Translations under genes and position numbers: made by a program | NCBI RefSeq assembly: GCF_902713615.1 | Contig: NW_024055461.1 | Span: forward strand, 2,734,345 to 2,798,344 | Length of the DNA stretch: 64,000 bases | Source of the DNA: Scyliorhinus canicula | Lineage: Eukaryota | Direction: 5' to 3' | Part shown: one piece after another, positions 1,325 to 28,783 of the stretch | How the letters are laid out: each line of letters opens with the position of its first letter | Numbering within the stretch: position 1 is the first letter of the stretch | Notes under the pieces: generated by a model | Database searches by the model: none | Told to the model about the DNA's origin: nothing | The model's input: the letters and a program-made list of their open reading frames with translations, nothing else

Positions 1325-1625
1325 TAAAATACATTTAGAGTACCCAATTGTTATTTTTTCCAATTAAGGGTCAATTTAGAGTGGCCAATCCACCTAACCT
1401 GCACATCTTTGGGTTGTGGGGCTGAAACCCTCGCAGACATTGTGAGAATGTGCAAACTCCACACGGACATTGACCTAGGTAATGAACTCGAACCCGGGTC
1501 CTCAGCGCCGCAGTTTTACTTTATACAATTAGATTTGAATAATTTATAATGAACAATGCATTCGCTTGCCTTTTTTAACCGACTCTCCCTATTTTATGCT
1601 AACCACTGCGCCACATGCCGTCTTC
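1325..1625 (-). mobile_element. HE1-like tRNA-derived SINE carrying an 85-bp inverted insertion
   Basis: gtggccaatccacctaacctgcacatctttggg...gtgcaaactccacacggac...gaactcgaacccgggtcc...ctaaccactgcgccac. Confidence 0.8.
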
Positions 1626-2167
1626 ATTGGTTATTTTCAATTGCGAAATCATATCAATTGAGCCGGTAATCTGTTGTAAATATGAATATTCCCTGGTTGC
1701 TTCATAGTTGCTATGTTACTGAGTCCCGGTTATGAACATCAGGTTGCCCAGAATCTGTAATAAATAATACTGCACTACAAATAAGAAAAATTAAATTTTA
1801 CAAAGTTTTCAATGTTCCAAAGAGCAGCGTCTGTTCTGATCAGACAAAAGGCTGGGGGTTGTTTTGATAACATGTATGCAGAATGTCCAATAACGTGCTT
1901 CAAATAATCAGCAAGGGAACCTGATATTTGGAACAATTATTTCGATCGATTCTTTGAAGAACGGCCACAGGCAGGAAAAGACTCGAATGAAATGCACTGG
2001 TCCGCTTGGGTCACAACATGGGGCACCAGATCATAGGCCGATATGTGTGTGAAACATTCTAAGTGATGCATTTAATTAATTAGCTTTCAAAACAACCTTC
2101 AAGTTTTAGTATATCTGATTGGTTCAGTTCCTTGAACAGCCACAGGCACCTTCGCTTTACTATCATT

Positions 2168-2372
2168 GGGCGGGATTCTCCAGTCCGCCAGCCGCGTGCT
2201 TCCCAGCCGCGTGTTTCTCGGCCGCGCGTCGATCGCTGGAGGCGGTATACTGACTTCCCGCTGATCGTCAATGGGATTTCCTATTGTAAGCATCCCATGC
2301 CACAATGAAACTCACTAACGTGTGTGCGCTGCCGGTGGGTAAATCGAATTGCAACGGCCAGAGAACTCCGGC
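2168..2372. mobile_element. Possible MITE or palindromic non-autonomous element
   Basis: GC/CpG-rich island in an AT-rich intron with imperfect inverted ends gggcgggattctcc ... gagaactccggc. Confidence 0.4.
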
Positions 2373-2859
2373 AATTATTTCATCATTATTAAATGGAATT
2401 TGATATGGTTTCGGTGATGCACATTATGACCCCTTCTTTCAAAATAATTTGTTAATAACTATTTGTGTTGTGTTTCCTATAATCGAAGCGTTTAATAGCA
2501 CAGAGGACGATATTCACCACTGAATATCCAGGCTTGGGCTGACAAGTGGCTTGCTCCATTCGTGCCACACAATGCCAGGCAATGGCCATCCAGCAGTTCC
2601 ACGTGCCCATTCCTCGAAGGAGAGCAGCTGTGCCTGCGTCTGGTTCCTAGGGAACCACTATTTGCAGTCCATTCATGGCTTTCGAGTAGTGGTTTGTGAC
2701 TGAAAACTCGTAGAAACCAGCTGCAGCGTTGATCTTATTCATACCTTTTACGCTTCAGTGGACTAAGTGGAGAACCTCCAATGTTTGTACACGTTGCCCA
2801 CATCAAAGAGAAGAAAATGCACGATTTCACTATACCTGACTTCCTTTGATGTGGCCAAT

Positions 2860-5800
2860 GATTACATAGAGTCATGGACGTTTACAGCATGGAAACAGTC
2901 CTGTCGGCAAGCTGGTTCATGCCGCACAGTTTCCATCACTAAGTTAGTCCCACTTGCCTGCATTTGGCCCATATCCTTCTGCACTCACCCTGCCCGTGTT
3001 ACTGTCTAACTGCTTTTTAAAGAACAAAATTGTACCCCGCCACCACCACTGCCTCTGGCAGCCCATTCCAGATGCTCACCAAACTCTGTGTGAAGAAATT
3101 TCCCCTCTGGTCTCTTTTGTATCGCTCCCCTCTCACCTTAAACTTACGTCCTTTCGTTCTAGACTCCTCTATCTTTGTGGAAAAGTGTCGACTATTTACC
3201 TTATCGATGCTCCTCATTATTTTATAGACCTCTATAAGATTACCCCTAAGCCACCTACACTCCAGGGAAAAAAGTCCCAATCTATCCAGCCTCTCCTTAG
3301 AACTCAAACTATAAAGTCCAGGTAGCGTCCTCATAAATATCTTCTGCGCTCTTTCTAGTTCAACAATATCCTTCCTATAATAGGGTGAGCAGAACTGAAC
3401 ACAATATTCGAGGTGCCGTCTTACCAATATCTTGTACAACTTTACAAGACGTCCCAACCTGTATACAGTATTCTAATTAATAAAATCTAGCATGCTGAAT
3501 GCCTTCTACACCACCCTGTCCACCTACGATTCCACCTTGAAGAAGCGATGAACCTGTATTCCTAGATTTCTTTGTTCTGTAACACTCCCCAAATCCCTGT
3601 CATTAACTGAATAGGTCCTGCCCAGATTTTATCTACCAAAATGCATCACCTCACATTTATGTCAATTATGTACCCAAATGTCAATCTCGCCCTGGATTCC
3701 GTGAGATTTAACCTTTTGCAACAACCTACCATGCAGTAGCTTGTCAAAAACCTTGCTAATGTCCATGTAGGCAACGTAGACCGCACTGCCCTCATCTACC
3801 TTCTTGTTTACCTCTTCAAAATATCAATCAAATTCGTGAGACATGACTTTCCCCTTACAAAGCCATGTTGACTTTCCCTGATTAGCCCTTGCCTGTCTAA
3901 ATGCCTGTAGATCCTGTCCCTCAGAATACCTTCTAACAACTTACCCACTACAGAAGTAACACTCACCTCTCCTGCGCCTGTTGATGATTTAAATATCTCA
4001 GCTAGGGCCGCGGCAATTTCCTCGCTAGCCTCCCGCAACATCCTGGGATACATTTCGTCAGGTCCCGGAAATTGTCTATCTTTATGCGCTTTAATATCTC
4101 CATCACCTCCTTCTCTGTAGTATGTACACTCCTCAATACACCACTTTTTATTTCTCCAATTTCCCTAATATTCATGCCTTTCTCAACAGTAAATACTGAC
4201 GAGAAATATTCATTCAGGTCCTCTCCCATCCCTTGTGGATCCGCACATAGATGGCCCTGTTTATCCTTAAGAGGCCCTACCCTCTCCCAAGTCACTCTTT
4301 TGACCTTTATGTGGCCGGAAAAGCTCTTTGGATTTATCTTTGCCTTATCTGCCAAGACAATCTCATGTCTCCTTTTTGCCCTCCTGACTTCTCTCTTAAA
4401 TCTAATCCGACAAGCCCTATACTCTTCAAGGGATCCACGCGATTCTACCTGCCTATGCATGTCAAATGCCTCCTTCCTCCTTTTGACCATAACCTCAATA
4501 TTCCGAGTCATCCAGGGTTCCCTACTTCTACCAGCCTTACCCGTCACTCTAAGAGGAATGTGCTTACACTGAACCCTAGTCAACACACTTAAAAAAAATG
4601 TTTTAGAGTACCCAATTATCTTTTTCCCAATTGATGGGCAATTTAGTGTGGCCAATCAACGTAACCTGCCCGTCTTTGGGTTGTGGGGGTGAAACCCATG
4701 CAAACACGGGGAGAGTGGGGCAGCAGGGTAGCATGGTGGTTAGCATAAATGCTTCACAGCTCCAGGGTCCCAGGTTCGATTCCCGGCTGGGTCACTGTCT
4801 GTGTGGAGTCTGCACGTCCTCCCCCTGTGTGCGTGGGTTTCCTCCGGGTGCTCCGGTTTCCTCCCACAGTCCAAAGATGTGCGGGTTAGGTGGATTGGCC
4901 ATGCTAAATTGCCCGTAGTGTCCTAATAAAAGTAAGGATAAGGGGGGGTTGTTGGGTTACGGATATAAGGTGGATTCGTGGGTTTGAGTAGGGTGATCAT
5001 GGCTCGGCACAACATTGAGGGCCGAAGGGCCTGTTCTGTGCTGTGCTGTACTGTTCTATGTTCTATGTTCTATGAATGTGCAAACTCTACACGAACAGTG
5101 AGCCAGGGCCGGGATTTTAACCCCAGTCCTTAGCGCCACAGTCCCGGTAACCACACGCCGCCATGCCAACGCACTTTAGAAAGACTGCCACTTACCAGCT
5201 GCCCCCTTGCCCGTAAACAGGCTCTCCCAATCAACTTTTGAAAGTTCCCGCCTAATATCCTCGAAATTGGCCATGCCTCAATTCAGAATTTTAAGTTTTG
5301 GGCCAGAACTATAATTCTTCATAGCGATCTTAAAACTAATGGAATTATGGTCACTGGTCCCAAAGTCATCCCTCACTAACACGTCCGTCATCTTCCCTTC
5401 CTTATTCCCCAAGAGAAGGTCAAGTTTTGCCCCCTCTCTAGTCGGGTCATCCACATATTGAATGAGAAATTCTTCCTGAATACCCTCGATAAATGTCCCT
5501 CCATCCAATCCCCTAGTGCTACGGCTGTCCCAGTTCATGTTAGGAAAGTTAAAGTCCCCTACTATTGCCACCCTATATTTCCGGCAGCTATCTGTAATCT
5601 CCTTATATATTTGTCTCTCGATTTCCCGCTGACTATTTGGGGGCCTATATCACAGTCCTGCCAAAGTGATCTCACCCTTCCTATTTTTTAGTTCTACCCA
5701 TATAGACTCAGGCGGACCCTTGGATATATCCTCTCTCTGTACTGCTGTGATGTTGTCCTTAATCAAAAACGCAACTCCCCCTCCTCTCCTATCCCCTGGT

Positions 5801-5970
5801 CTATCTTTCCTGCAGAACTGTACCCTGGAACATTGAGCTGCCAGTCCTGCCCATCCTTTAGCCATGTTTCAGTAATAGCTATAATATCCCAATCCCATGT
5901 ACCTATCCATGCACTGAGTTTATCTGCCTTGCCCGTTAGGCCTCTAGCATTGAAATAAATGCAGTTCAAT
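2860..5970 (-). mobile_element. Degenerate CR1-clade LINE ORF2 in the J-C intron, with internal deletions and nested SINEs
   Basis: Fragments CIYFNARGL..IIAITETW, GDFNFP..TSDHN, VTSVVGKLLEG..QHGFVRGKSCLTNL and HLEYCVQF..ERLDRLGLFSLE. Confidence 0.85.
4585..5167. mobile_element. SINE (+, 4716-5075) nested in a SINE (-), nested in the CR1
   Basis: The outer copy acacggggaga|...|atgtgcaaactc is split by gggcagcagggtagc...(ttctatg)n. Confidence 0.8.
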
Positions 5971-7070
5971 CTGTTTCTCTGCCTTCCACTGTTTCGTTAC
6001 TGGCTTTTGTTTCTGTCCCTTCTTTACTACCCTCTGACTTCCTGTAATGTTTCCCATGATGGTTCCCACATGGTTCGCATGATGTGAGCTATATGATTCA
6101 ATTGATATTTTGAAAGATTTTAACATAATTTTTCCATTACAAATTACGATGTGAACAAAAAAGCTTAAGATATGGTTTGGTCCATGTCGTTTTAATCAAG
6201 AACCATTTATTTTACCGACATTCAGAGACCCATTTCCCTAAATCGTTGAAATGGTATGTAATGGCTTTGATTTAACACCAGCATGGAATGAAGGAATAGA
6301 GAGTGTTTGTATCTAATTTTGTACATCACGATTTGTTCGAAGATTGGTTGAATCCGCAGTAGTGAGATATAATGGAACTTTTGAAATGTAGATCGAGAAT
6401 TTGCAGATCAATGGGATTGCTGAAGATCGTGATCCACCGAAAGGCCTTCTTCTCTGACCTCATTTTCTATTGTTCTTTAATTCCGCGTTATGCTTGAAAT
6501 GTCGGCATTTATTTCAAATATTGTATACGCTGTATGTCTGGTATGAGGAGCTCTGTAATAAGGAAAACAATATCCATCAGAATGTAAACGAATACATCAG
6601 ATAGACAGAACACCGACTTACATTATATAGCCGCTGCAATTCAGTAATAAGCTCCAAGATGATTCACAGGGACGTAATAAGAGAATGTCTGACACCAATT
6701 AATCAAAAGCTTGGCCAACAAGATACCATTTAAGGCAACACATTAAAGCAGAAACAGCGCGGGGCAAAACGGTAGCACAAGTGCTGCGTTTCTCTTAATC
6801 TGATGGCACTTACTTCATCCAGACTTCATCAAGATGTTATTTTTAAATTATATTTTCCCAACGTGTTGCGTCCGAGAGAGGCACAGGTGGATTTCAAATC
6901 AGGGGAACAATCAGTGACAATTCAAATCTGATGGAACTGTTGGAAGCTCAAAATGTGGATGTAGATTTTAATCGAACACCACTGAACGGCAGCCAAATTT
7001 CAAGCTGCTTGCTAAATTAATGAGCACGAATAAGGGTACCTAATTTATTGAATTGACAATTCTTTCCCAG

Positions 7071-7370
7071 CGCCACCGACGCCGCCCACCCTCTATGGTC
7101 TGCTCTCCTTCTGTGAGCAAAGAAACACTGCCGGCTCCGTGACCTACGGCTGTTTGGCGACTGACTATTTCCCGGAAATCACCAGCCTTACTTGGAAGAA
7201 AGATCATGAGACAATCACCGCTGGATTGAAAACGTATCCATCAGTGCTAAACAAGAAGGGAACCCATACTCTGAGCAGCCAGTTAACCATAAGCGCGACA
7301 GAGATAGGGAGCAGCAAAATCTACTGCGAGGTTCGACGCAGCGAGTCGGTCTGGAAGAAGGAAATGCCAG
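7071..7370 (+). CDS. IGHM: IgM heavy chain constant exon CH1 (Cmu1)
   Basis: Acceptor tttcccag|7071 and donor 7370|gttagt, phase 1. Translates [17 protein letters not shown]...[19 protein letters not shown]...[28 protein letters not shown]1-set Cys/Trp/Cys pattern plus the extra N-terminal Cys used for light-chain linkage. Confidence 0.95.
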
Positions 7371-7929: not shown

Positions 7930-8241
7930 ATCATGTGATCCACCATCCAACTCTTATCCTCACAACGAGTCAACGGGAAGAAATCACAAGCAGCAGGTTT
8001 GCAACCGTCGCCTGTTCAATCGTTGATTTCCGTCCAAGCACAATTAACGTCAAATGGCTGAAGAATGGACAAGCCTTCGACTCGGGCTTCGTCACCTCTC
8101 CCGCCTTTAAAGTGAACGGGAACTTCTCGGCGACTAGTCGGCTGACGGTCCCCGCTGGGGAATGGTTCACCCACACGGTCTATACCTGCCAGGTCACTCA
8201 TCAAGGGGTCACCCAAAATCGAAATATCACCAGATCTCAGG
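7930..8241 (+). CDS. IGHM: IgM constant exon CH2 (Cmu2)
   Basis: Acceptor ttctttaag|7930, donor 8241|gtaaga. Translates ...[23 protein letters not shown]...[14 protein letters not shown]...YTCQVTHQG; sequons NFS and NIT. Confidence 0.95.
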
Positions 8242-8915: not shown

Positions 8916-9224
8916 ATGAATCCACATGCACCGATCCCATAATTACTCTGCTGCCACCAGCAATAGAACAGGTCTTGCTGGAGGCGACCGTGACCTTAAC
9001 CTGCATCGTGACGAACGCTCCTTATGGAGTCAGCGTGTCCTGGAGCCACGAAAAGAGGCCTTTGAAAGCAGAGATTACAGCCCAACATGGAGAGGATCGA
9101 GATAACGTGGTCAGCAACTTAAATGTCTCAACACAAGCCTGGCTGAGTGGAGCTGAGTTCGACTGTGTGCTGAGTCATCAGGATCTGCCGACTCCTCTCA
9201 GAAAGTCCATCCGCAAGGAAAGAG
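8916..9224 (+). CDS. IGHM: IgM constant exon CH3 (Cmu3)
   Basis: Acceptor ttccacag|8916, donor 9224|gtgaga. Translates [41 protein letters not shown]...[33 protein letters not shown]. Confidence 0.95.
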
Positions 9225-9254
9225 GTGAGAGGTGCGATTGAAGCAATAAAGCCA

Positions 9255-9545
9255 GTCATTGTGTTTTTAGCACTGTTGTTTCACAGCACCAGGTTCGATT
9301 CCTGCTTGGTCACTGCCTCTGCGGAGCCTGCACGTTCTCCCCTTGTCTGCATGGGTTTCCTCCGGGTGCTCCGGTTTCCTCCCACAGTCCCAAAAGACGG
9401 GCTGTTAGGTAATTTGGTCATTCTGACTTCTCACTCTGTGTACCCGAACAGGCTGCGGAATGTGGCGACTAGGGGATTTTCACAATAACTTAATTGCAGT
9501 GTTAATGTAAGCCTACTTGTGACACTAATAGGAATTATTATTTAT
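9255..9545 (+). mobile_element. HE1-like SINE in the CH3-CH4 intron
   Basis: ggttcgattcc, ctgcacgttctcccc..gggtttcctccgggtgctccggtttcctcccacagtcc core; gtggcgactagggg..gtgacact tail. Confidence 0.8.
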
Positions 9546-9692
9546 TTCCGGGGCCAATAAAATTACAAGTTTTTCTATTCCCTGCTAGAGGCACAAATTT
9601 TATCGGTTAACTTCTTTAACTGAACACACTGCGGCTAAAAGTGAGCAATTAAATGAAAACTGGGGAGGAATATGAGGCAGAAAGGAATAAGA

Positions 9693-10039
9693 TCATAGAA
9701 TTTACAGTGCAGAAGGAGGCCATTCGGCCCATCGAGTCTGCACCGGCTCCTGGAAAGAGCACCCTACCCAAGTTCAACACCTCCACCCTATCCCAATAAC
9801 CCAGTAACCCCACCCAACACTAAGGGCAATTTTGGACACTAAGGGCAATTTATCATGGCCAATCCACCTAACCTGCACATCTTTGCACTGTGGGAGGAAA
9901 CCGGAGCACCCGGAGGAAACCCACGCACACACGGGAAGGATGTGCAGACTCCGCACAGACAGTGACCCGAGCCAGAATCGAACCTGGGACCCTGGAGCTG
10001 TGAAGCCATTGTGCTATCCACAATGCTACCGTGCTGCCC
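9693..10039 (-). mobile_element. HE1-like SINE in the CH3-CH4 intron
   Basis: Reverse complement starts gggcagcacggtagcattgtggatagcac and ends with a CR1-like tail. Confidence 0.85.
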
Positions 10040-10352
10040 AGAATTGTAACATCTGCTAGCAGGGTTGAAAGAATCTGGCGGGTGTGGACAATAAATTCCA
10101 GAACTAAACAGTTGGGCCGAGTGGCGCGTTTCAGTCCCAAAAATACAATGTAAATTTCCAGTTCAAATTGAGAATTTGTCAGGGAGAAGGATTTCACCAG
10201 CGTTTGCTCCGATCTGGACAGCAGGACAGTTCCCGGTGGGGCGGGGGAGTGGCGTGATGGAACGGTTTTACATTTGCTGGAAAGCACATTTCTTTCATCA
10301 TTTGTTTCCGGAATTGTCCAGTCCATAGATATTTATTGTACATTTTCTGCAG

Positions 10353-10744
10353 ATTCCAACCCGCGGGAACCGTCCGTCTCTGTCCTCCTGCCCTCGGCTG
10401 AAGACGTCTCCGCTCAGAGATTCGTCTCCCTCAGCTGCTTAGTGAGAGGTTTCTCCCCCCGAGAGATCTTCGTCAAGTGGACCGTCAACGACAAGCCGGT
10501 GAATCCCGGGAACTACAAGAACACCGAGGTGATGGCGGAGAACGGCAATAGCTCCTTCTTCATGTACAGCCTGTTATCCATTGCAGCGGAGGAGTGGGCC
10601 AGCGGCGCTTCTTACTCCTGTGTGGTGGGACATGAAGCCATCCCCTTGAAGATCATCAACAGAACGGTTGATAAATCCAGCGGTAAACCCAGTTTTGTGA
10701 ACATTTCCCTCGCTCTGATGGACACCGTTAATTCATGTCAATGA
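10353..10744 (+). CDS. IGHM: IgM constant exon CH4 plus secretory tailpiece
   Basis: Acceptor ttttctgcag|10353. Translates [81 protein letters not shown]. Internal donor G|gtaaac at 10682/10683 for the membrane form; tailpiece has sequon NIS and a penultimate Cys. Confidence 0.96.
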
Positions 10745-10778
10745 GAATCTACCAATTGCATTAACACTTAAAAACCAC

Positions 10779-10784
10779 AATAAA
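10779..10784 (+). terminator. Poly(A) signal of secreted IgM mRNA
   Basis: AATAAA 35 nt after the tailpiece stop, followed by a T/GT-rich stretch. Confidence 0.8.
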
Positions 10785-12030
10785 AACCTTTACTTCCACT
10801 TGTGGATTAAAATACATCTTTTAATTAATGTTGTTTCCCATTTAAACCAAGAGGATAACTGTTCATCTGAAATTGAATAATTGTCAGTTTTATTCCCCTG
10901 GCTTAGACAGTCAACGATCCAAATTGAGATACACTGGCAAAGAGAAGCAGATTGATGCTCAGTAATTCCATGATTCCACTGAATAAGATCTGCACCTTTC
11001 CTCCATGTGCTGGTAGATGTGGAAAAAGCAGTTTCAAATATAGATGCCTTCTTTTATCAAGCCCATCGAAGTTTCATACAATCTTGTTATAACATCGAGC
11101 TTACTGAGAACGTACATAACAGTAGGACCTGAACCTATGAACTCCTTCAGCATATATGGAGAAGTGCACTTTTACCCCATTCTACATAAACATCATCAAC
11201 AGAGGGAGTTAAAGGCGGATTTGTGAATTCATTGTAGTCCCAGGCCCACACTCAGCCACCAGAGAGGAGGAGAAATAGAAATTATTGGCCCATTATATTC
11301 ATTCTTCCGCCAGAGAGAGGAATAAGGATAATTGATATCTCATTATACACTTTCTTCCGCCGGAAGAGAAAGGGTCACCCATTATATTAATTCTTGCAGC
11401 AGAGAGAGAACACAGGGTAATTGGTAAACCATTATACTCATTCTTCCAGGAGTGGAAGGATAATGATCATTGGTAAATCATTATACTCATTCTTTCACCA
11501 GAGGGAGGGGGAAGGGATACTTGATAACGCATTATACCCATCAGAGTTAGGATAATGGGCAATTGTTAACCCATTATAGTCATTCTTTCGCAAAAGAGAG
11601 GGGGGAAAGTAAATCCATTATACTCATATTTCTACCAGAGAGAGGAGAAAAAAACGATTAATAACCGATTCTGTTCCTTCTTCCACCAAAGGGAAAAGAA
11701 AGGATAATTGATCACCCATTATACCCATTCTTCCACCAGAGAGAGAGGAAAAGGAGTAATTGACAACGCATTTTACCCATTCTTCCACCAGAGAGAGGAA
11801 AAGGAGTAATTGACAACGCATTATAACCATTCTTCCACTAGAGAGAGGAAAAGGGGTAATTGATAGCCCTTGATGCTCATTCTTCCGCCAGAGAGAGTAG
11901 AAAGAGCAATTGTAAACCCATTGTACTCATTTTTTTCTTAAGAGACTGAAGAAAGGGCAATTGATCAACCATTATACACAATTTTCCACCAGCGAGAGGA
12001 AAAAAGGTAATTGTGAACTCATTGCACTGA

Positions 12031-15000
12031 GAGGGGCTGGTTTAGCACAGGGCTAAATCGCTGGCTTTGAAAGCAGACCAAGGCAGGCCAGCAGCACGGT
12101 TAAATTCCCCTACCAGCCTCCCCAAACAGGCGCCGGAATGTGGCGACTAAGGGCTTTTCACAGTAACTTCATTTGAAGCCTACTTTTTTTAAAATATAAT
12201 TTTTATTGGAATTTTTTACAGAAAATATAAAACATAACGACAAACAATGAAATGCAACAAAATAACCCATAATAACTGTAACACCCCCAGACCGTATCGA
12301 TGCATGTATCACATCCCCCCACCCCCCAACCCTAATGAACAACAAAAGAACTTAAAAATAAATTAAAATTAAATAAATAAACAAACAAACATAGTCATTG
12401 TCTGCCCCCCCCCTTTCCCTCCCCCTTCCCCCTTTCCCTCCCCCTTCCCCCTTTCCCTCCCCCTTCCCCCTTTCCCTCCCCCCCCGGGTTGCTGCTGCTA
12501 CTGTCCCTGTACTCTATCGTTGAGCCAGAAAGTCGAGAAAAGGTTGCCACCGCCTAAAGAACCCTTGTACCGATCCTCTCAGGGCGAATTTGACCTTCTC
12601 TAGCTTAATGAAACCCGCCTGTCATTGATCCAGGTCTCCACGCTTGGGAGCCTCGCATCCTTCCATTGTAGCAAGATCCTTCGCCGGGCTACTAGGGACG
12701 CAAAGGCCAGCACACCGGCCTCTTTCGCCTCCTGCACTCCCGGCTCCACCCCAACCCCAAAAATCGCGAGTCCCCATCCTGGCTTGACCCTGGATCCCAC
12801 CACCCTCGACACCGTCCTCGCCACCCCCTTCCAGAACTCCTCCAGTGCCGGGCATGCCCAGAACATATGGGCATGGTTCGCTGGACTCCCCGAGCACCTG
12901 ACACACCTATCTTCACCCCCAAAGAACCTACTCATCCTCGTCCCAGTCATGTGGGCCCGGTGCAGCACCTTGAATTGGATGAGGCTAAGCCGTGCACACG
13001 AGGAGGAAGAATTAACCCTCTCCAGGGCATCAGCCCATGTCCCGTCTTCGATCTGTTCCCCCTTTTCCCCCTCCCACTTAGCTTTCAGCTCCTCTACCGA
13101 CGCCTCCTCCGCCTCCTGCATAACCTTGTAGATATCAGATATCTTCCCCTCTCCGACCCAGACCCCCGAAAGCACCCTGTCGCTCACCCCCCTCGTGGGA
13201 AGCGAAGGGAATCCCTCCACCTGCCGCCTAGCAAATGCCTTTACCTGCAGATACCTGAACATGTTCCCCGGGGGAGCCCAAATTTCTCCTCCAACTCCCC
13301 CAGGCTCGCAAACCTCCCATCAATAAACAGGTCCCTCAGCTTTCTGATGCCCACTCTATGCCAACCCTGAAATCCCCCATCAATGTTCCCCGGGACGAAC
13401 CTATGGTTCCCCCTTAACGGAGCCTCCATCGAGCCCCCCACTTCTCCCCTATGTCGCCTCCACTGCCCCAAATCTTGAGGGTAGCCGCCACCACTGGACT
13501 CGTGGTATACCTCGTAGGAGGGAGCGGCCATGGCGCCGTTACCAGGCCCCCCAGGCTTGTATCTCCACAGGACGCCCTTTCCATCCGTTTCCATGCTGCC
13601 CCCTCCCCCTCCATTACCCACTTGTGCACCATCGACACATTGGCCGCCCAATAATACCCCGAGAGATTGGGTAACGCCAGCCCCCCCATCTCTACCCCGC
13701 TCCAAGAAGACCCTCTTCACCCTTGGGGTCCCATGCGCCCAAACAAAGCTCATAATGCTGCTAGTCACCCTTCTTAAAAAGGCCCTAGGGATAAAGATGG
13801 GCAAACACTGAAACAGGAACAAGAACCTTGGGAGAACCGTCATTTTGACAGACTGCACTCTACCCAGCAACGATAGCGGCACCATGTCCCACCTTTTAAA
13901 TTCCTCCTCCATCTGCTCCACCAGCCTGGTAAAATTAAGCTTATGGAGAGTCCCCCAACTCCTGGCCACCTGCACCCCCAGGTATCTGAAACTCTTCACT
14001 GCCCTCTTAAATGGGAGTCTCCCAATTCCCTCCTCCTGATCACCCGGGTGTACTACAAATATCTCACTCTTGCCTAAATTTAACTTATAGCCCGAGAAGC
14101 CCCCAAATTCCGCTAACAGCTCCATCACCCCCGGCATTCCCCCTTCTGGATCCGCCACATACAACAGCAGGTCGTCTGCATACAGCGATACATGATGTTC
14201 CTCCCCACCCCGCACCAGACCCCTCCATCTGCCTGACTCCCTCAACGCCATAGCCAAAGGTTCAATCGCCAATGCAAAGAGCAAGGGGGACAGGGGGCAC
14301 CCCTGCCTGGTCCCACGGTAGAGCCTAAAGTACTCCGATCTCCTTCCATTGGTAACTACATTTGCCATCTGAGCCGCGTAGAGCAGCCTCACCCATTTGA
14401 TGAATCCCTCCCTGAATCCGAACCGCTCCAGCACCTCCCACAGGTACCCCCACTCAACTCTATCAAACGCTTGCTCTGCGTCCAGCGCCACCACTATCTC
14501 CGCCTCCCCCTCCACTGCCAGCAGCATAATAACATTTAGCAGTCTCCGCACATTCGTGTTGAGCTGCCGTCCCTTGACAAATCCTGTCTGATCCTCGTGT
14601 ATCACCCCTGGCACACAGTCCTCTATCCTGGTGGCCAGGATCTTCGCCAGCAACTTAGCGTCAACATTGAAGAGCGAGATAGGCCTGTATGATCCACACT
14701 GCAAGGGGTCCTTATCCCACTTCAGGATCAGAGAGATCAGTGCCCGCGACATCGTCGGGGGCAAAGCCCCCCCCCCCCCTCCCATGCCTCATTGAAGGCT
14801 CGCACCAACAAGGGACCCACCAGATCCGCATACTTTTTATAAAATTCCCCCGGGAACCCGTCTGGCCCCGGCGCCTTACCTGACTGCATTTGTCCAAGTC
14901 CCCTGACTAGCTCCTCCAACTCTATCGGCGCCCCCAGCCCCTCTACCAGCTCCTCTTGAACCCTTGGGAAACATAGCCTGTTCATGAAGCTCTCCATCCC

Positions 15001-18000
15001 CCCTCTCCCCATCGGAGGTTCTGACCAGTACAGTTCCTCGTAGAAGTCCCTAAAGACCACATTTACTTCTGTCCCCTTCTGCACTACATTCCCACCCCTA
15101 TCCGTCACTCCACCAATTTCCCGAGCCGCATCTCGCCTGCGGAGCTGATGCGCCAACATCCTGCTCGCCTTCTCCCCATACTCATATACCGCACCCTGCG
15201 ACCTCCTCCACTGTGTCTCCGCCTTTCTGGTGGTCAACAAGTCAAATTTGGCCTGCAAACTGCGCCGTTCCACCAGCAACCCCTCCTCCGGTGCCTCCAC
15301 GTATCTCCTGTCCACATCCAGGAGCTCCCCCACCAGTCTCTCCCTCTCCTTCCTCTCCCGCCTTTCCCTATGGGCCCGGATGGAGATCAGCTCCCCCCGG
15401 ATCACTACTTTCAGAGCCTCCCAGACCATCCCCACCCGGACCTCCCCCGTGTCGTTGGTATCCAGATACCCCTCAATACTTCCCCGGGCCCTCCTACACA
15501 CCTCCTCATCAGCCAGCATCCCCACATCCAGGCGCCAGAGCGGACGCTGGTCCCGCGCCTCCCCCATCTCCAGATCATCCCAGCGCGGAGCATGGTCTGA
15601 AATTGCTATGGCTGAATACTCGGCATCCTGCACCTTCGGGATCAATCCCCTGCTCAGGACGAAAAAATCTATTCGAGAATAGACCCTATGGACATGAGAG
15701 AACAAGGAATACTCCCGCGCTCTTGGCCTCCCAAACCTCCAGGGATCCACCCCTCCCATCTGGTTCATAAACCCCCTCGGCACTTTGGCCGCCGCCGGTC
15801 TCCTACCCGTCCTTGAACTGGACCGGTCCAGTGGGGGATCCAGCACTGTGTTAAAGTCTCCCCCCATGATCAGGCCCCCCGCCTCCAGGTCCGGAATGCG
15901 GCCCAACAAGCACCTCATGAAGCCGGCATCATCCCAATTCAGGGCATATACATTTACCAGCACCACCTTCTCTCCCTGCAGCCTACCCTTCACCATAATA
16001 TATCTGCCCTCCTTGTCCGACACCACCTCGGCCGCCTCGAACGCCACCCTCTTCCCCACCAGAATCGCCACCCCCCCCGGTTCTTCGCGTCCAATCCTGA
16101 GTGAAAAACCTGCCCCACTCACCCCTTCCTCAGACGAACCTGGTCCGCCACCTTCAAGTGGGTCTCCTGGAGCATAGCCACGTCCGCCTTCAGCCCCTTC
16201 AGATGAGAAAACACCCTCGTTCTCTTAACCGGCCCGTTCAGCCCCCTCACACTCCAGGTAATCAGCCGGATCAGAGGGCAACTGCCCCTCTCCCCCGCCA
16301 GCTAGCCATAGCTTATCGACTGCTCGCCCCAGGCCAGCTCGCCCCGCCTGACCCGTTCCCCATGGCGATAACGCCTCTCCTCTACCCCCCCGACCCACAC
16401 CAGCTCCTTCCTGGCCATTCCAGCAGCAACCCGGCATCCCCCCCCCACCCCCCCCCCCCCCCCCCACCCCCCCAGGCTAGGACCCCTCCTAGCCGCGACG
16501 CACCCTCCATGGTACTTCCGTGAGTCAGCTGACTTCTGCTGACCCGGCAGCTCCCGCCAATACCCATCTCCTCCCGGCATGGGGTCATCCCCCTCTTGCC
16601 ACACCTCCTTGGCACCGCTTCAGCGGGGGAAAGAAAACCAGTGAAGGCCACGCCCCCACCTCCAGCTCCGCCCCCACGCCCCGCAGCGCGGACATCCAGA
16701 GGAAAGCCCGCGCTTTCACACTGCCACACCCCACCCTTCTGACGCAGCTCCTCAAAATCCAGTTTCACCCCAACCCCCAGCCCCGTACAGAAGAGAACAT
16801 ATAAAGCACATACCCCCAACGTTCCCCACATACCCCACACCCATACCCAACAGACAAACCCACCCGGAAACAAAGCAAAAAGAAAACCAGCATAAAAATA
16901 ACACCTGTCAAAATTGAAGATCAGCAACAGCGAAAACAGCAACGGCCATAGTGTGTCCCCAGACCCTAGTTCTCCCTGCAGCCTACCCTTCTCCGCCTGT
17001 ACAAAGGCCCACGCCTCCTCCGGGGACTCGAAGTAGTGGTGCCGGTCCTTATATGTCACCCACAGACGCGCAGGCTGCAGCATTCCAAATCTGACCTGCT
17101 TGGCATGAAGCACCGCCTTTGTCCGGTTGAACCCGGCCCGCCGCTTTGCCACCTCCGCACTCCAGTCCTGGTAGATTCGCACCACCGAATTCTCCCACTT
17201 GCTGCTCCTCACTTTCTTGGCCCAGCGCAGCACACACTGCCGGTCACTAAATCGATGGAACCGCACCAGCACCGCCCGCAGGGGTTCATTTGCCTTAGGC
17301 CTCCTGGCCAGCACTCTGTGAGCTCCCTCAAGCTCCAGGGGCAAATGGAAGGACCCCACTCCCATCAACGAGCTCAACATCGTGGTCACGTACGACGGGA
17401 GATCCGACCCCTCCAGCCCCTCCGCCAGGCCCAGGATCCTCAAATTCTTTCGCCTCGTGCGAAGGTCCAGCTCCTCCAAGCGGTCTTGCCACTTTTTGTG
17501 AAGTGCCTCGTGCAACTCCACTTTCCCCACGAGGACCATGGCCTCCTCCTCCCTCTCAGCGGCCTGCTGCTGCAACTCCCGAATAGACGCCTCCTGTGCC
17601 GCCTGGGTCCCAAGCAGCTTGTTTGTAGTTGCATTCAGGGAGTCCAGCAACTCAGCCTTCAGCTCCGCAAAACAGCGCAGAAGAGAGGCCTGCTGCTCCT
17701 GCACCCACTTCCACCAGTCCTCGGGTGTTCCACCGGCCGCTATTTTGTCTTTCTTCCCCTGCTTTTCTTGGGGAGCTGCTGCAGCTTTTTCCTTTGCCCC
17801 ACTCCAGGTGAGCACCATAAATTATGGGGAATGCTCCTCTAGACACCTTCCCCACTGGGATTCGTCGGGACAGCATCGACTGCTGCTAGAATTCAGCTTT
17901 CATAAAGGCCCTCAAGTCAGCTTGAGAAGTCTGAGCTGGCCCTTCCCCCGCCTGCCTGCTTGTCGAGGCTTTTTTCTACTGCTGCTTCAGCCCAATCTTG

Positions 18001-19019: not shown

Positions 19020-22000
19020 TGATACCTTTTTTTTTGAGTGCTACAGTGAGAGTTTGGTGACTGAGGGAGTATAAGGGTTCAGTTTTATTTAAAGTCTAGT
19101 ATTTCTTTTATTTAGTTAATTAACTTAAAAGTTGCTGTTTCTAGGATGTGCGTGGTGAGGGATACCACAGGTGTCCCCGCTGACTATACCTGCGGGAAGT
19201 GCACCCAACTCCAGCTCCTCAGAGGCCGTGTTAAGGAACTGGAGCTGGAGCTGGATGAACTTCGGATCATCCGGGAGGCAGAGGGGGTTATCGAGAAGAG
19301 TTACAGGGAGGTAGCCACACCAAAGGTACTGGACAAGAGTAGCTGGGTTACAGTCAGAGGAAAGAACACTAACAGGCAGACAGTGCAGGGATCCCTCGTG
19401 GCCGTTTCCCTTCAAAACAAGTATACCGTTTTGGATGCTGTTGGGGGGGATGACCTACTGGGGGAAGGCCCCAGCGGTCAGGTCTCTGGCACTGAGTCTG
19501 GCTCTGGGGCTCAGAAGGGAAGGGGGGAGCATAGAAAAGCAATAGTAATAGGAGATTTAATGGTTAGGGGAATAGATAGGATATTCTGTGGTCGCGAGCG
19601 AGACTCCCGAAAGGTATGTTGCCTCCCGGGTGCCAGGGCCAGGGATGTCTCGGACCGTGTCTTCAGGATCCTGAAGGGGGAGGGTGAGCAGCCAGAAGTC
19701 GTGGTGCACATTGGTACCAACGATGTAGGTAGGAAAAAGGGTGTGGAGGTAATAAACAAGTTTAGGGAGTTAGGCTGGAAGTTAAAGGCCAGGACAGACA
19801 GAGTTGTCATCTCTGGTTTGTTGCCGGTGCCACGTGATAGTGAGGCTAGGAATAGGGAGAGAGTGCAGTTGAACACGTGGCTGCAGGAATGGTGTAGGAG
19901 GGAGGGCTTCAGGTATTTGGATAATTGGAGCGCATTCTGGGGAAGGTGGGACCTGTACAAGCAGGACGGGTTGCATCTGAACCAGAGGGGCACCAATATC
20001 CTGGGGGGGAGGTTTTATAGTACTCTTTGGGAGGGTTTAAACTAATTTGGCAGGGGAATAGGAACCGGATCTGTAGTCCAGCAACTCAGGAAGCCGATAT
20101 TCAGGACGCCAAAGCACGTAGTGATGCAGTGGGGAAGGTAACACTGACAAAGCAGAGTACTTGCAGGCAAGGAGATGGGTTGAAGTGTGTATACTTTAAT
20201 GAAAGAAGCATCAGGAATAAGGTGGGTGAACTTAAGGCATGGATCGGTACTTGGGACTACGATGTGGTGGCCATCACGGAAACTTGGATAGAAGAGGGGC
20301 AGAAATGTTTGTTGGAGGTCCCTGGTTATAGATGTTTCAACAAGATTAGGGAGGATGGTAAAAGAGGTGTGTGGGGGGGGGGGGGGGTTGGCATTGTTAA
20401 TTACAGATAGTATAACAGCTGCAGAAAGGCAGTTCGAGGGGGATCTGCCTACTGAGGTAATATGGGTTGAAGTCAGAAACAGGAAAGGAGCAGTCACCTT
20501 GTTGGGAGTTTTCTATAGGCCCCCCAATAGCAGCAGAGATGTGGAGGAACAGATTGGGAAACAGATTTTGGAAAGGTGCAGAAGTCACAGGGTAGTAGTC
20601 ATGGGTGACTTCAACTTCCCAAACATTGAGTGGAAACTCTTTAGATCAAATAAATTGGATGGGGTAGTGTTTGTGCAGTGTGTCCAGGAAGCTTTTCTAA
20701 CACAGTATGTAGATTGTCCGACCAGAGGGGAGTCCATATTGGATTTAGTACTTGGTAATGAACCAGGGCAGGTGATAGCTTTGTTAGTGGGGGAGCATTT
20801 TGGAGGTAGTGACTACAATTCTGTGACTTTCACTTTAGTTATGGAGAGGGATAGGTGCGTGCAACAGGGCAAGGTTTATAATTGGGGGAAGGGTAAATAC
20901 AATGCTGTCAGACAAGAATTGAAGTGCAGAAGTTGGGAACAAAGGCTGTCAGGGAAGGACACAAGTGAAATGTGGAACTTGTTCAAGGAACAGGTACTGC
21001 GTGTCTTTGATATGTATGTCCCTGTTAGGCTGGGAAAAGATGGTCGAGTGAGGGAACCATGGTTGACAAGAGAGGTTGAATGTCTTGTTAAGAGGAAGAA
21101 GGAGACTTATGTAAGGCTGAAGAAACAAGGTTCCGACAGGGCGCTGGAGGGATACAAGATAGCCAGGAGGGAACTGAAGAAAGGGATTAGGAGAGCTAAG
21201 AGAGGGCATGAAAAATCTTTGGCAGGTAGGATCAAGGAAAACCCCAAGGCCTTTTACACATATGTGAGAAATATGAGAATGACTAGAGCGAGGGTAGGTC
21301 CGATCAAGGACAGTAGCGGGAGATTGTGTATTGAGTCTGAAGATATAGGAGAGGTCTTGAACAAGTATTTTTCTTCAGCATTTACAAATGAGAGGGGCCA
21401 TATTGTTGGAGAGGACAGTGTGAAACAGACTGATAAGCTTGAGGAGATACTTGTCAGGAAGGAAGATGTGTTGCGCGTTTTGAAAACTTGAGGATAGACA
21501 AGTCCCCCGGGCCTGACGGGATATATCCAAGGATTCTATGGGAAGCAAGAAATGAAATTGCAGAGCCGTTGGCAATGATCTTTTCGTCCTCGCTGTCAAC
21601 AGGGGTGGTACCAGAGGATTGGAGAGTGGCGAATGTCTTGCCCCTGTTCAAAAAAGGGAATCGGGATAACCCTGGGAATTACAGGCCAGTTAGTCTTACT
21701 TCAGTGGTAGGCAAAGTAATGGAAAGGGTACTGAGGGATAGGATTTCTGAGCATCTGGAAAGGCACTGCTTGATTAGGGATAGTCAGCACGGATTTGTGA
21801 GGGGTAGGTCTTGCCTTACAAGTCTTATTGACTTCTTTGAGGAGGTGACCAAGCATGTGGATGAAGGTAAAGCAGTGGATGTAGTGTACATGGATTTTAG
21901 TAAGGCATTTGATAAGTTTCCCCATTGTAGGCTTGTGCAGAAAGTAAGGAGGCATGGGATAGTGGGAAATTTGGCCAGTTGGATAACAAACTGGCTAACC

Positions 22001-23450
22001 GATAGAAGACAGAGAGTGGTGGTGGATGGCAAATATTCAGCCTGGAGCCCAGTTATCAGTGGCGTACCGCAGGGGTCAGTTCTGGGTCCTCTGCTGTTTG
22101 TGATTTTCATTAACGACTTGGATGAGGGAGTTGAAGGGTGGGTCAGTAAATTTGCAGATGATACGAAGATTGGTGGAGTTGTGGATAGTGAGGAGGGCTG
22201 TTGTTGGCTTCAAAGAGACATAGATAGGATGCAGAGCTGGGCTGAGAAGTGGCTGATGGAGTTTAACCCTGACAAGTGTGAGGTTGTCCATTTTGGAAGG
22301 ACAAATATGAATGCGGAATACAGGGTTAACGGTAGGGTTCTTGGCAATGTGGCGGAGCAGAGAGATCTTGGGGTCTATGTTCATAGATCTTTGAAAGTTG
22401 CCACTCAAGTGGATAGAGCTGTGAAGAAGGCCTATGGTGTGCTAACGTTCATTAGCAGAGGGATTGAATTTAAGAGCCGTGAGGTGATGATGCAGCTGTA
22501 CAAAACCTTGGTCAGGCCACATTTGGAGTACTGTGTGCAGTTCTGGTCGCCTCATTTTAGGAAGGATGTGGAAGCTTTGGAAAAGGTGCAAAGGAGATTT
22601 ACCAGGATGTTGCCTGGAATGGAGAGTAGGACATACGAGGAAAGGTTGCGGGTGCTAGGCCTTTTCTCATTAGAACGGAGAAGGATGAGGGGCGACTTGA
22701 TAGAGGTTTATAAGATGATCAGGGGAATAGATAGAGTAGGCAGTCAGAGACTTTTTCCCCGGGTGGAACACACCATTACAAAAATAATAATATAAATAAA
22801 ATCACTTATTGTCACGAGTAGGCTTCAATGAAGTTACTGTGAAAAGCCCCTAGTCGCCACATTCCGGCGCCTGTTCAGGAGGCTGGTATGGGAATTGAAC
22901 CGTGCTGCTGGCCTGCTTTAAAAGCCAGCGATTTAGCCTTGTGAGCTAAACCAGCCCCAAGGGGACATAAATTTAAGATAAATGGTGGAAGATATAGAGG
23001 GGATGTCAGAGGTAGGTTCTTTACCCCAGAGAGTAGTGGGGGCATGGAATGCACTGCCTGTGGAAGTAGTTGAGTCGGAAACGTTAGGGACCTTCAAGCG
23101 GCTATTGGATAGGTACATGGATTAGGGTAGAATAATGGAGTGTAGGTTAACTTCTTCTTAAGGGCAGCACGGTAGCATTGTGGATAGCACAATTGCTTCA
23201 CAGCTCCAGGGTCCCAAGTTCGATTTCGACTTGGGCCACTGTCTGTGTGGAGTCTGCACATCCTCCACTTGTGTGCGTGGGTTTCCTCCGGGTACTCCGG
23301 TTTCCTCCCACAGTCCAAAGATGTGCAGGTTGGGTGGATTGGCCATGAAAAATTGCCCTTAGTGTCCAAAATTCTATGATTAACCTAGGACAAAAGTTCG
23401 GCGCAACATCGTGGGCCGAAGGGCCTGTTCTGTGCTGTATTTCTCTATCT
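19020..23450 (+). mobile_element. CR1-clade LINE with esterase ORF1, disrupted, in the CH4-TM intron
   Basis: ORF1 19146-20045 (GDL replaces GDS). ORF2 fragments 20160-22795 with a G-run frameshift and a stop at 21489. SINEs at 22790-22958 and 23162-23370; tail gggccgaagggcctgttctgtgctg. Confidence 0.9.
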
Positions 23451-24360: not shown

Positions 24361-27194
24361 CGACCCATTTGGTAACACGTGACTTTGATATCGCATAGAA
24401 AATAGACATGTTGAAACTTTTAATCTTGTAATCGTCCGCGAACTTACACAAATGATAAATATAATGGGAATATTAAATTATGATGGGTGGCACGGTAGCA
24501 CAGTGGTTAGCACTGCTGTCTCACAGCGTCATGGACCTGAGTTTAGCACATGGCTAAATCGCTGTCTTTGAAAGCAGACCAGGGCAGGCCAGCAGGACGG
24601 TTCAATTCCAGTACCAGCCTCCCCGAACAGGCGCCGGAATGTGGCGACTAGGGGCTTTTCACAGTAACTTCATTTGAAGCCTACTTGTGACAATAAGCGA
24701 TTTTCATTTCATTTCATTCATTTCAATTCCAGCATTGGGTGACAGTGCGGAGTCTGCACGTTCTCCCCGTGTTTCTGCAAGCTTCCTCCGGTGCTCTGGT
24801 TTCCTCCCACAGTCCAAAGATGTGCAGGTTATATGTGCATTGGCTGTGCTAAATTTCACCATCGTGTCCAAAAGGTTAGGTGGGGTCTCTGTTTCACAGG
24901 GATAGGGTGTGGCCTATGCTCTTTCAGAGGGTCTGTGCAGGCTCGATGGGCTGAATAGTCTCCTTCTGCACTGTTGAGGTTCTATGGTTCCATGAGAAGA
25001 GAATGGCAATTGTGGCGCACCTATCTGTGCTGCACGCTGCATAGAGTGACTCACAGAGTTCTATTCTTTGCAGACAGAAAGTACACGTATGCCTATTGTG
25101 CCTCTTTCATCTGAAAAATAAGTGACAGCCATGCTCTGACACATTCCCCAGGGCAATTCCTCGACAAATCAGTGTCACGCTATCTGGTTTGAATTCAAAC
25201 AATGATTGGCAGTTTACTATTAATGAACATTTACCCAGTACATTCTCCATGAATCGCCTCCAACAATTAGAGTTGCCAACCAAGCAGCACTCTCTTCTAA
25301 TGATTAATAATTTGTTGCTCCCTTTACATTTTCCATTCCTATGATTGTCCTGTGACCCGTGGATTAAAAGATTTGATATGTATAGTTTTCATGTATTTAT
25401 ATAGACACGTTGGCATGTAACACATCCTCGAACATGAACTCACAAACAGCGAGTAAAGCAGAGCAAGGTGTATCCATACACACGTGCGCAAACGCTAAAG
25501 AACAAACAAAGTCACCAGGCTCAAGGAGAAATTAAAATTAAAATGTATTCTTTAACAGGCATGCAAAATCTGTCCCAACTACGTGTTGTTCTTTCAAAGA
25601 CTGGAACCTAGTTCTCCTTTAGAAACTGATAAGTTAATGACTTGCCAAACACAAATATTTTCTTTTAAAAACTCGTCCGGTCTATTAACCATGATAATGG
25701 ACAATAACCCAGTTAGTAGTAATTTGAACGTACCTCCAAGATCACCATTGTAGAGCAAAAGAGCATAAGACATTCTATCAGAACCAACCCATGGGCCTAA
25801 AACTGCTTCAACATTTAATGCGATCATGTCTGACATTGGGTCTCACTTCAATAACCGACCCATTCCTCATGTCCTTGGATGCCCTGAGAAATTAACAATA
25901 TACTTACCCCAGCCCTCAGAATATTCAATGATGGGGCAGCACGTTGGCACCGTGGTTAGCAATGTTGCCTTAAAGCGCTGGGAACCGGTTCAATTCCGGC
26001 CTTGGGTGGTTGTCTGTGTGAAGTTGGCATTTTCTCGCTGTGTCTGCGTGGGTTTCCTCTGTGTGCTCAAATCGATTCCGACAATCCAAAGATGTGCAGG
26101 TTAGATGGATTGGCCATGTCAAATTGCCCCTCAGTGTCCAAATACCTGCTCTGCAGTTACAGGGATAGAGTGGGTAAGTTGCTGTTTCAGGGGGTCGATT
26201 GTGACTCGATGGACCGATTGGCTGCCTTCTGCACAGGAGGAAATCTGTGTGATGGGACATCCACAGCCATCTGGGATAGGGTATTCCAAAGACCCATAAC
26301 CCGAAATGAAGAAATGTCCACTCATCTGTATGCAAAAGGATAAACTCATTGTCCAAAGGCTGTGTCACCATTTATTTGCACTCCCCGACCAGCGTAAACT
26401 GGGCGGCACCGTAGCACAATGAGTAGCACTAATGCTTCACAGCACCAGAGTCACTGGTTTGATTTGCAGCTTGGGTCACTGTCTGTGTGGAGTCTGCACA
26501 TTCTCCCCGTGAATGCGTGGGTTTCCTCCAGGTGCTCCGGTTTCCTCCCACATGTCCCAAGAGAAGTGTTGTTAGCTAATTTGGGCATTCGGAATTCTCC
26601 CTCTGTGTACCCGAACAGGAGCCGGAAAGTGGCGACTAGGGGTTTTGAACAGTAGCTACATTGCAGTGATAATGTATGCCTACCTGTGACAATAAAGATT
26701 ATTATTAAAACATATAACTTCAACGTTCTCGATGGATCACCTTTACCAAGCAGATTATCTACCTTGTCAAACCCATTCGGATTATTTTGTGTTTCAATGA
26801 GATATGCTCTCATTCAAAACTAGAGATTCTACACCTAATTTACTCATTTCAGATGAGTTAACTTCCTTCGTTTAGTCTTCATGATATTACTTATTGACAG
26901 TTGGTACAAAATTAAACCAGACTAAATGAGCATCTGACACTGAAGTAAAAATATATTTTCGAACGCAGAACACATAAGTAACACAGATGAGCAATTAGTA
27001 GAGATATATTTCTGAGCATGATGAACTTAACAATAGGTGTATATTGAAAATTGCATTAAGTGGGAAAGTTAATATCAGATTTTGAAAATTACATTATTGA
27101 GCAAAATAATATGTGAACAAAGATGAAAGTGAATAACCAATATAACATCCACCTGTAACAAATTAGCTAATGGTATCTTCCTCTAACCTCCCAG

Positions 27195-27322
27195 ATTCCA
27201 TTGGCCACATCTGGATTGAAGGCAATGAGGATGGTCACGGAAACATCTGGACAACTGCTTCCACATTCATCATTCTGTTCATCTTCAGCATGTTCTACAG
27301 CGTTGCCGTCACTCTGGTGAAG
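27195..27322 (+). CDS. IGHM: IgM transmembrane exon TM1
   Basis: Acceptor ctaacctcccag|27195, phase 1, matching the CH4 internal donor. Translates [43 protein letters not shown], carrying the antigen-receptor TM (CART) motif. Donor |gtgaaa at 27323. Confidence 0.93.
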
Positions 27323-27465
27323 GTGAAAAGATTCAATCCATCCACATTGCAATCAGATAGGATCAATTCGAAAAATCTCCAGAAGTCTTAACTGATAAAA
27401 ATCATTTAGATAAAAGCATCCGCCCCATAAAACGTTTGCTTCATTCTTTTATTCCTCTTTTGCAG

Positions 27466-27474
27466 GTCGAGTGA
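27466..27474 (+). CDS. IGHM: IgM TM2 exon (Val-Glu-stop)
   Basis: Strong polypyrimidine tract and CAG (cttttattcctcttttgcag) followed by GTC GAG TGA, 143 nt after TM1, in the expected position and phase. Confidence 0.75.
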   Translation, partial: VE

Positions 27475-27916
27475 TGCACTGAATTTGAGACTTCATGTGG
27501 ATTTTCTCCTAATGTGTATCTATGTATTTCTGCTGCTGACAATTATATACATTACCATAATGAAGCTCAAAGTTAAATTCGTTTCAGTGACAAGATCAGA
27601 ATCTGTAACTGAGATAGCAATATAAACTGGGTTTCTGTTTTGTTCTGTTTAAATTGAATGAGATCATCGCAGTGTTAGCTTGGAGTTTCTCCGTTGTTTG
27701 AAGTTCCTATGTAAATTAGAAGCAATTTCTTGTTATTAATTGTTCATTGCCCTGAATGTCGAAGCCACGTTTTCTCTCTTTGATTTGTTACAGTTTTAGT
27801 CAGTTGTCAGTTTAGACCGTTTGTGTTCTGTTCTCAATGTGACGCTTAGTTGATATATTCACCTGGTGTCAACTATAAATGAAATAATTCTGTTTAATGG
27901 TCTCTGTAAAATTGAT

Positions 27917-27922
27917 AATAAA
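27917..27922 (+). terminator. Candidate poly(A) signal of membrane IgM mRNA
   Basis: First AATAAA I found downstream of TM2, about 440 nt after the stop. Confidence 0.55.
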
Positions 27923-28783
27923 TATTGAATTACAAGTCAAGGAACTTCCACGCTCCAGGCCTCTTTTACATCACACCGTGATTCCAGCCAGAGGTACCCT
28001 CCGGAATAGAACACAAGTCCCTGGCGCTGGTGCTAACCACTGTGCTACCGTGCCACCCACACACACACATACACTCTCACACACACGCGACAACACAGAC
28101 ATACACACACATGCACACATATTCACACCTACAGCCACACCCACACATGTGCCAGAACAACTACAATCTATAATCTACGCTGGCCCATCAAATATTTCCA
28201 AGATAGGAACACCACAGGAATCGGGGTAGCACGGTGGCACATTGGTTAGCACTGCTTCCTCATAGTTCCAGGGATCCGGATTCAATTTGGGCCTCAGGTG
28301 ACAGTATGCGTGGAGATTGCACTTCCTCCCATTGTCTGCGTGGGTTTCCTCTGGATGCTCCAGTTTCATCCCACAGTCAAAGACGTGCAGATTAGGTCGA
28401 TTGGCCAGGTGAAAGTGCTCCTTAGTGTCAAAAAGGTTCGGTGGGGCTGCTGGGCTGCGGGGATATTGTGTCGAGGAGTGGGCTTAAGTATGGTGCTCTT
28501 TCCAAGGGCCGGTGTATACTCTATGGGCCGAATAGCCTCCTTCTGCTCTGTAAATTTTATGATTCTGCAAAAGCTTTTTGCAGTCATGCATGCCCCAACT
28601 GATAGCCTCCATATTTTCTGTTACTTTCATTAGTCCAAGCCCTCTTGCATCTCTTTGAATAATTTACATTTCTGTCTGACTGGACAAATTCCTTCTGATT
28701 TCATCGGCCACTATCAAACCATCTCCCCAAAATGTGAACTTCACATTCTTATCATCTACCCAAATGCACTAAACGTCGGATGA

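Follow-up and report, generated by a model that had tools for sequence, protein, structure and literature searches.

Organization of the IgM constant region

The window analysed here, a 64-kb stretch of DNA from the catshark Scyliorhinus canicula, holds the constant part of a cartilaginous-fish IgM heavy-chain cluster (Table 1). All four CH exons are open and encode the canonical immunoglobulin cysteine and tryptophan residues; the boundaries of CH1 were set from splice sites and phase. The CH4 exon shares 97% amino-acid identity (tblastn) with the Scyliorhinus torazame IgM model GCB76214. In the 7 kb upstream of CH1 (window positions 1–7070), a search for V, D and J segments and RSS returned none, and the same interval holds no tandem array with a TRF score of 100 or more.

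Table 1. Coordinates of the IgM features in the window, counted from its first base; a slash marks an exon–intron border.
Feature	Position	Strand	Basis or remark
IgM CH1 exon	7071–7370	+	tblastn to shark IgM C regions; acceptor cccag/, donor CAG/GTTAGT, length divisible by 3
IgM CH2 exon	7930–8241	+	tblastn to shark IgM C regions
IgM CH3 exon	8916–9224	+	donor GTGAGA; tblastn to shark IgM C regions
IgM CH4 exon with secretory tailpiece	10353–10744	+	stop 10742–10744
CH4 internal donor G/GTAAAC	last exon base 10682	+	seen in sequence
Secretory AATAAA	10779–10784	+	
TM1 exon, phase 1 (acidic spacer and membrane span)	27195–27322	+	phmmer, tblastn, alignment to bamboo-shark clusters
TM1–TM2 intron, 143 bases	27323–27465	+	donor GTGAAA 27323–27328, A at +5; acceptor ends ttgcag
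In-frame intron read-through, V-K plus 20 residues	27323–27391	+	stop TAA 27389–27391; ORF 27170–27391
TM2 coding part GTC GAG TGA (Val-Glu-stop)	27466–27474	+	sequence; acceptor ttttgcag just before
Membrane-form 3' UTR (end approximate)	27475–27940	+	AATAAA 27917–27922

Vertebrate mu genes reach their membrane exons by way of a donor inside CH4, and such a donor is seen here. Joining its last exon base (10682) to position 27195 is predicted to restore the frame ...KSS-D-SIGH..., for which the bamboo-shark counterpart reads ...KSSDSID...; at the sequence level, the CH4 internal donor is in phase with TM1, as expected of the 3' end of a mu membrane (mu-m) gene. The first immunoglobulin-related sequence after CH4 is TM1, 16.5 kb downstream. 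The intervening intron is filled by two LINE copies with long open frames, one on the minus strand (14737–17818) and one on the plus strand (19146–22795); the latter carries an ORF1 with a GDSL-esterase domain, followed by endonuclease and reverse-transcriptase ORFs (Pfam). A 50-base tandem repeat of ~15 copies with 65% matches occupies positions 11289–12000, beginning ~500 bases past the secretory poly(A) signal.

Public sequencing runs bear on the expression of CH4. Among the matches listed, RNA-like runs from at least four studies contain 0.20–0.23 of the sampled words of 9230–11800, about the share taken up by the CH4 secretory exon, so that CH4 of the window, or an identical paralog, is transcribed; this share informs on the CH4 secretory exon and not on the membrane form.

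Identity of the membrane end

The TM1 exon, with borders cccag/AT TCC ... GTG AAG, encodes a mu-type membrane span preceded by an acidic spacer. Its 44 residues, searched against 1.8 billion proteins (phmmer), match mu-type membrane segments from sharks to mammals with a best E value of 4e-10, and shark IgM membrane forms in turn match window positions 27194–27328 with E values of ~1e-13 to 1e-14 (tblastn). A two-codon terminal exon lies ~140 bases past TM1. Its acceptor has pyrimidines at 22 of 25 bases and ends in cag/G, and the donor, the acceptor and the 9-base exon align in the same columns with those of four bamboo-shark IgM clusters whose models end in KVK. Judged from sequence, the identity of 27195–27474 as the IgM TM1 and TM2 exons is well beyond chance. 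The AATAAA listed for the membrane form is the sole poly(A) signal after TM2 up to position 29500.

An earlier, sequence-only reading of this locus had described the TM2 exon as GTC GAG TGA, the TM1 donor as GTGAAA with A at +5, and a read-through peptide ending at 27389–27391, and all of these details agree with the sequence when checked. It had also claimed that the germline tail departs from the Lys-Val-Lys expected of a mu-m chain. This is borne out, for TM2 encodes V-E and the tail is K-V-E, and among the database matches whose sequence stops directly behind the span, 14 carry KVK and one carries KVE (phmmer, 1.8 billion proteins). The same reading had allowed for a different downstream exon that would supply the missing Val-Lys. 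The TM2 site is the only acceptor with V-[KE]-stop and a pyrimidine tract within the 64 kb. Elsewhere in the window an AG/GTN AAR stop occurs just once, at 37371; with pyrimidines at 9 of 25 bases and a distance of 10 kb, this site was rejected.

The locus shares most of its architecture with the canonical mu-m C-terminus, as found in Heterodontus francisci (P23088), bamboo shark and the M1/M2 exons of mammalian IGHM. The CH4 donor G/GTAAAC, the acidic spacer, a span of the form TTASTF...FYS...VTL.K, the short intron and the two-codon terminal exon at the orthologous position are all present. It differs from this model in the terminal Glu, in a TM1 donor that lacks the +5 G, and in a divergent TM1 core. 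The exon keeps the TTAST...FYS...VT membrane motif, and is only ~71% identical to the S. torazame and bamboo-shark peptides, although CH4 is 82–97% identical. The hydrophobic core at 27263–27290 reads IILFIFSM and is unusually divergent from the ITLFFLSI of other shark IgM clusters.

Two derived changes in the TM2 exon and the TM1 donor

Related sequences indicate which states at this locus are derived. The four bamboo-shark clusters all have AAG/GTGAGA at the TM1 donor, and their TM2 exons read GTT AAG TGA in three clusters and GTA AAA TAA in the remaining one. A spliced skate-like mRNA contig, whose protein clusters with the little-skate mu chain, reads ...GTG AAG GTC AAG TGA, one base away from the TM2 exon of the window. 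In the window's own species, four RNA reads of similar copies show G at 27327, the canonical +5 G of the donor. These reads come from runs X2 and X4, have 90–95% likeness over window positions 27290–27340, and run ...AGC GCT GCA GTC ACT CTG GTG AAG GTGAGAAG...; their source copies are probably paralogs. The four reads extend 18 bases into the TM1–TM2 intron and then diverge, and represent either unspliced RNA or carried-over DNA. Taken together, the bamboo-shark, skate and similar-copy states argue for two derived single-base changes in this cluster, AAG to GAG in TM2 and G to A at donor position +5. The second change also converts the Arg codon AGA of the read-through frame to the Lys codon AAA, so that the unspliced frame happens to read KVK.

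The sequence-only reading had considered that GAG might be a base-call error for AAG. Support for an error at either site (GAG being truly AAG, or GTGAAA truly GTGAGA) was sought and not found, and the similar copies with GTGAGA did no more than make a mis-assembly worth checking. The check is provided by an independent contig, assembled from a separate public run (X1), that spans 27211–27563 at a mean word depth of 19.4. This contig shares with the window both G27469, from the GAG codon, and A27327, the +5 base of the donor, and differs from it at 7 other positions. Its match at these two sites, despite seven differences elsewhere, argues that GAG and GTGAAA are not errors of the assembly, and we consider an error at either of them extremely improbable.

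The differences listed away from the ends of the X1 contig are T27472A, A27241C and G27434A. The substitution T27472A turns the TM2 stop TGA into AGA (Arg), and the spliced product of that allele or paralog would gain 34 codons. A27241C is silent in TM1 (GGA to GGC), and G27434A lies inside the TM1–TM2 intron. Considered with the weak donor and the Lys-to-Glu change, T27472A would fit either a relaxed constraint on TM2 or the use of a retained form.

Distribution of Glu-ending tails

The survey of tails across species found KVK in Heterodontus (P23088 and AAB20992), in four Chiloscyllium punctatum models, in the skate-like transcript and in S. torazame GCB60865. Two of the three S. torazame gene models (GCB76214 and GCB75424) end in KIE, and a model from the elephant shark Callorhinchus (A0A4W3JEY8) ends in KVE; the S. 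torazame and Callorhinchus tails were read from automatic gene models. A KIE tail is impossible by read-through of a GT donor, and these S. torazame models therefore imply a spliced TM2 exon of the Glu type. As judged from these predicted tails, chondrichthyan IgM ends in Glu in a recurring minority of cases, and at least two Scyliorhinus species have such tails alongside clusters that encode KVK.

With Glu tails present in both a sister catshark and the elephant shark, the KVE of the window is a modest lineage variant, not peculiar to this cluster, and to this extent the interpretation given in the sequence-only reading is not supported. That reading had itself named the case in which both KVE and the GTGAAA donor would already be the norm of the lineage. 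Part of this is upheld: Glu tails do occur elsewhere in the lineage, but the GTGAAA donor is not the norm in the sequences compared.

We place these tails in a K-[VI]-E class, defined by the boundary Lys, the terminal Glu and an otherwise intact mu-m end; the class is a grouping made here and not a described family. The window, with its three-residue tail KVE, fits this class, and shares with GCB76214, GCB75424 and A0A4W3JEY8 a tail in which Glu terminates the chain after the boundary Lys. The likeness to GCB76214 extends to the nearly identical CH4 exon. The S. torazame KIE models differ from the window in their middle residue, which is Ile, and in CH1–CH3, which are only 62–71% identical. 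A maximum-likelihood tree of the C regions is poorly resolved and does not group the window and the S. torazame KIE pair together, and we accordingly make no claim on one or several origins of the Glu tails. A protein search with the S. torazame IgM model P0041 returned no further catshark copies and no protein of the window's own species.

Splicing and retention of the last intron

The arrangement of splice sites suggests how the membrane mRNA would be made. The conserved internal donor of CH4 would be joined to TM1, after which the 143-base intron would be removed and the two-codon TM2 exon added. Since TM2 has GAG in place of the Lys codon AAG, the receptor made by splicing would end in K-V-E and not in K-V-K, and the first Lys, at the membrane boundary, would be retained. 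The computed side-chain charge of the tail drops from +2 to 0. The Lys at the boundary remains in place, and anchoring in the membrane should therefore be preserved.

The donor of TM1 has separately lost its +5 G, and its pairing to U1 is weaker as a result. Donor strength was estimated as the duplex energy with the 5' end of U1, by which the TM1 donor of the window, at -6.9 kcal/mol, falls between the bamboo-shark donor (-9.6) and the internal donor of CH4 (-5.5). The weakness that the sequence-only reading had ascribed to this donor is thus confirmed in comparison with bamboo shark, and G occupies +5 in all four bamboo-shark clusters as well as in the reads of similar copies. The TM1 donor is nonetheless stronger than the site inside CH4 on which all membrane mRNAs depend. 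This strength, with the short intron and the strong acceptor, leads us to expect a splicing ratio in which spliced KVE is likely the main product. Some intron retention is plausible, as the loss of the +5 G weakens U1 pairing, and would yield KVK followed by 20 unconserved residues.

The retained frame itself has little to distinguish it. Its length is reached by 27% of composition-matched shuffles and is thus not beyond chance. An alignment with four bamboo-shark clusters shows no counterpart, a protein search with the 73-residue read-through ORF found no candidate, and the peptide has no Tyr, no tyrosine motif and no W-I-F. A functionally meaningful read-through extension was rejected as unsupported, the frame being of chance length and without conservation. 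The hypothetical product does resemble the long tails of IgG, IgE and IgY (KVKWIF..., with a tail-tyrosine motif) in that it starts with KVK and runs ~20 residues further. Membership among long-tail immunoglobulin receptors was judged by a KVKWIF core and by a conserved tail of ~28 residues that includes a conserved tyrosine of the YxxM type; unlike these tails, the read-through has no WIF, no Tyr and no similarity, and consists of unconserved intron sequence of chance length, and we do not count it as a member. In a Logan contig of another vertebrate (L006 760–790), the mu M1 donor reads AAG/GTAAAG, and read-through there also gives K-V-K, followed by RARV and a stop. A GTAAAG donor elsewhere that likewise spells Val-Lys indicates that Val-Lys at the donor is a by-product of the donor consensus and not particular to this shark.

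Sequencing runs were searched for direct traces of the membrane form. Read mapping of RNA runs found no TM1–TM2 joint for this cluster; spliced reads of the similar copies would match only ~31 bases and may escape such mapping, so that their absence carries no weight. On this region the three raw RNA runs yielded 0, 1 and 3 reads, all with 90–95% likeness, which assigns them to similar copies and not to this cluster; reads with at least 95% likeness to this cluster were absent from the three runs. The only contig across the region is that of X1, a run of guessed type; it is unspliced through the intron and compatible with intron retention. It is the single, ambiguous piece of support for the two tail isoforms suggested by the sequence-only reading, which stay hypothetical. 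X1 contains nothing of 27000–27210 and is absent from the listed holders of 9230–11800, among which the listed shares start at 0.20, whereas for whole-genome DNA runs the share of 9230–11800 is 0.54–0.81. X1 is by these measures more RNA-like than whole-genome DNA, with a patchy DNA library as the other possibility. The last X1 contig extends ~100 bases beyond the only poly(A) signal.

Interpretation of the K-V-E tail

The reading that we prefer, with a probability of roughly 0.6, is that this is the membrane end of one member of a multi-cluster IgM heavy-chain family in which an AAG-to-GAG change has produced a germline K-V-E tail, that the spliced form is likely the main product, and that the cluster belongs to a small class of Glu-ending variants among cartilaginous fishes. 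Two other accounts of the same bases deserve weight. One, which we hold to be doubtful though not negligible, takes the changes as the neutral decay of a redundant cluster, one of dozens of IgM clusters, so that the Lys-to-Glu change, the weakened donor and the missing stop of the sibling copy would mark the beginning of pseudogenisation, without functional meaning. The packing of three derived or variant changes into ~150 bases speaks for it, as does the window, where V-D-J is not seen, and the three raw RNA runs are without any read of at least 95% likeness. Against it, the four CH exons and TM1 remain open with the canonical Cys and Trp residues and the TTAST...FYS...VT motif, and the sibling copy differs in TM1 by a single known change, at 27241, which is silent. 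Glu tails that recur in another catshark and in a chimaera argue that the change is tolerated and possibly maintained, and words of CH4 are present in RNA-like runs.

The other account, somewhat less probable still, makes retention the main outcome. The weak donor would mostly be skipped, the receptor would carry KVK and a Ser/Thr-containing tail of 20 residues, and TM2 would be untranslated and free to drift. Such drift would explain both AAG to GAG in this copy and the stop loss in its sibling, where T27472A abolishes the TM2 stop, and a single base, +5 G to A, both weakens the donor and makes a read-through KVR into KVK. Retention of a last intron would not be expected to trigger nonsense-mediated decay. 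The X1 contig, continuous through the intron from 27211 to 27563 at depth 19.4 and without a spliced companion, comes from a run whose behaviour is closer to RNA than to genomic DNA; its library type is a guess, however, a patchy DNA library would look alike, and the last contig of the run passes the poly(A) signal by ~100 bases. The splice sites themselves point the other way, with a strong acceptor and a TM1 donor whose pairing with U1 exceeds that of the donor inside CH4. So does the frame, which is of a length that 27% of shuffles reach and is not kept in bamboo shark, and, going by the S. torazame KIE models, TM2 exons of the Glu type are spliced in. We favor the spliced K-V-E receptor over both accounts.

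Possible consequences for the receptor

To our knowledge, KVK has been treated as invariant in IgM and IgD receptors. The motif is reported to matter for the membrane localisation of the B-cell receptor (PMC4600742), and to form the core of a HAX1-binding motif that speeds internalisation (PMC4947813). From these reported roles, a Glu tail could alter the surface residence of the receptor, or be neutral. The effect on surface transport, internalisation and signalling may be nil, as the Lys at the boundary persists. Should both kinds of tail be expressed, the B-cell receptors of sharks may differ in their trafficking.

A bolder proposal is that catshark IgM clusters constitute germline receptor classes distinguished by their tails (KVK, K-[VI]-E and possibly a retained-intron KVK with extension) that alter surface residence, internalisation or coupling. 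We regard it as improbable and put it forward as speculation; if true, a tail-based functional diversification of antigen receptors within the IgM genes would predate the evolution of long-tailed, class-switched isotypes. A literature search found no paper that mentions KVE or KIE tails of IgM, and proteins with Glu-ending tails are already in public databases, where they have gone unremarked. Glu-ending IgM genes that lie beside KVK genes in a single genus offer a natural experiment on the role of the last Lys.
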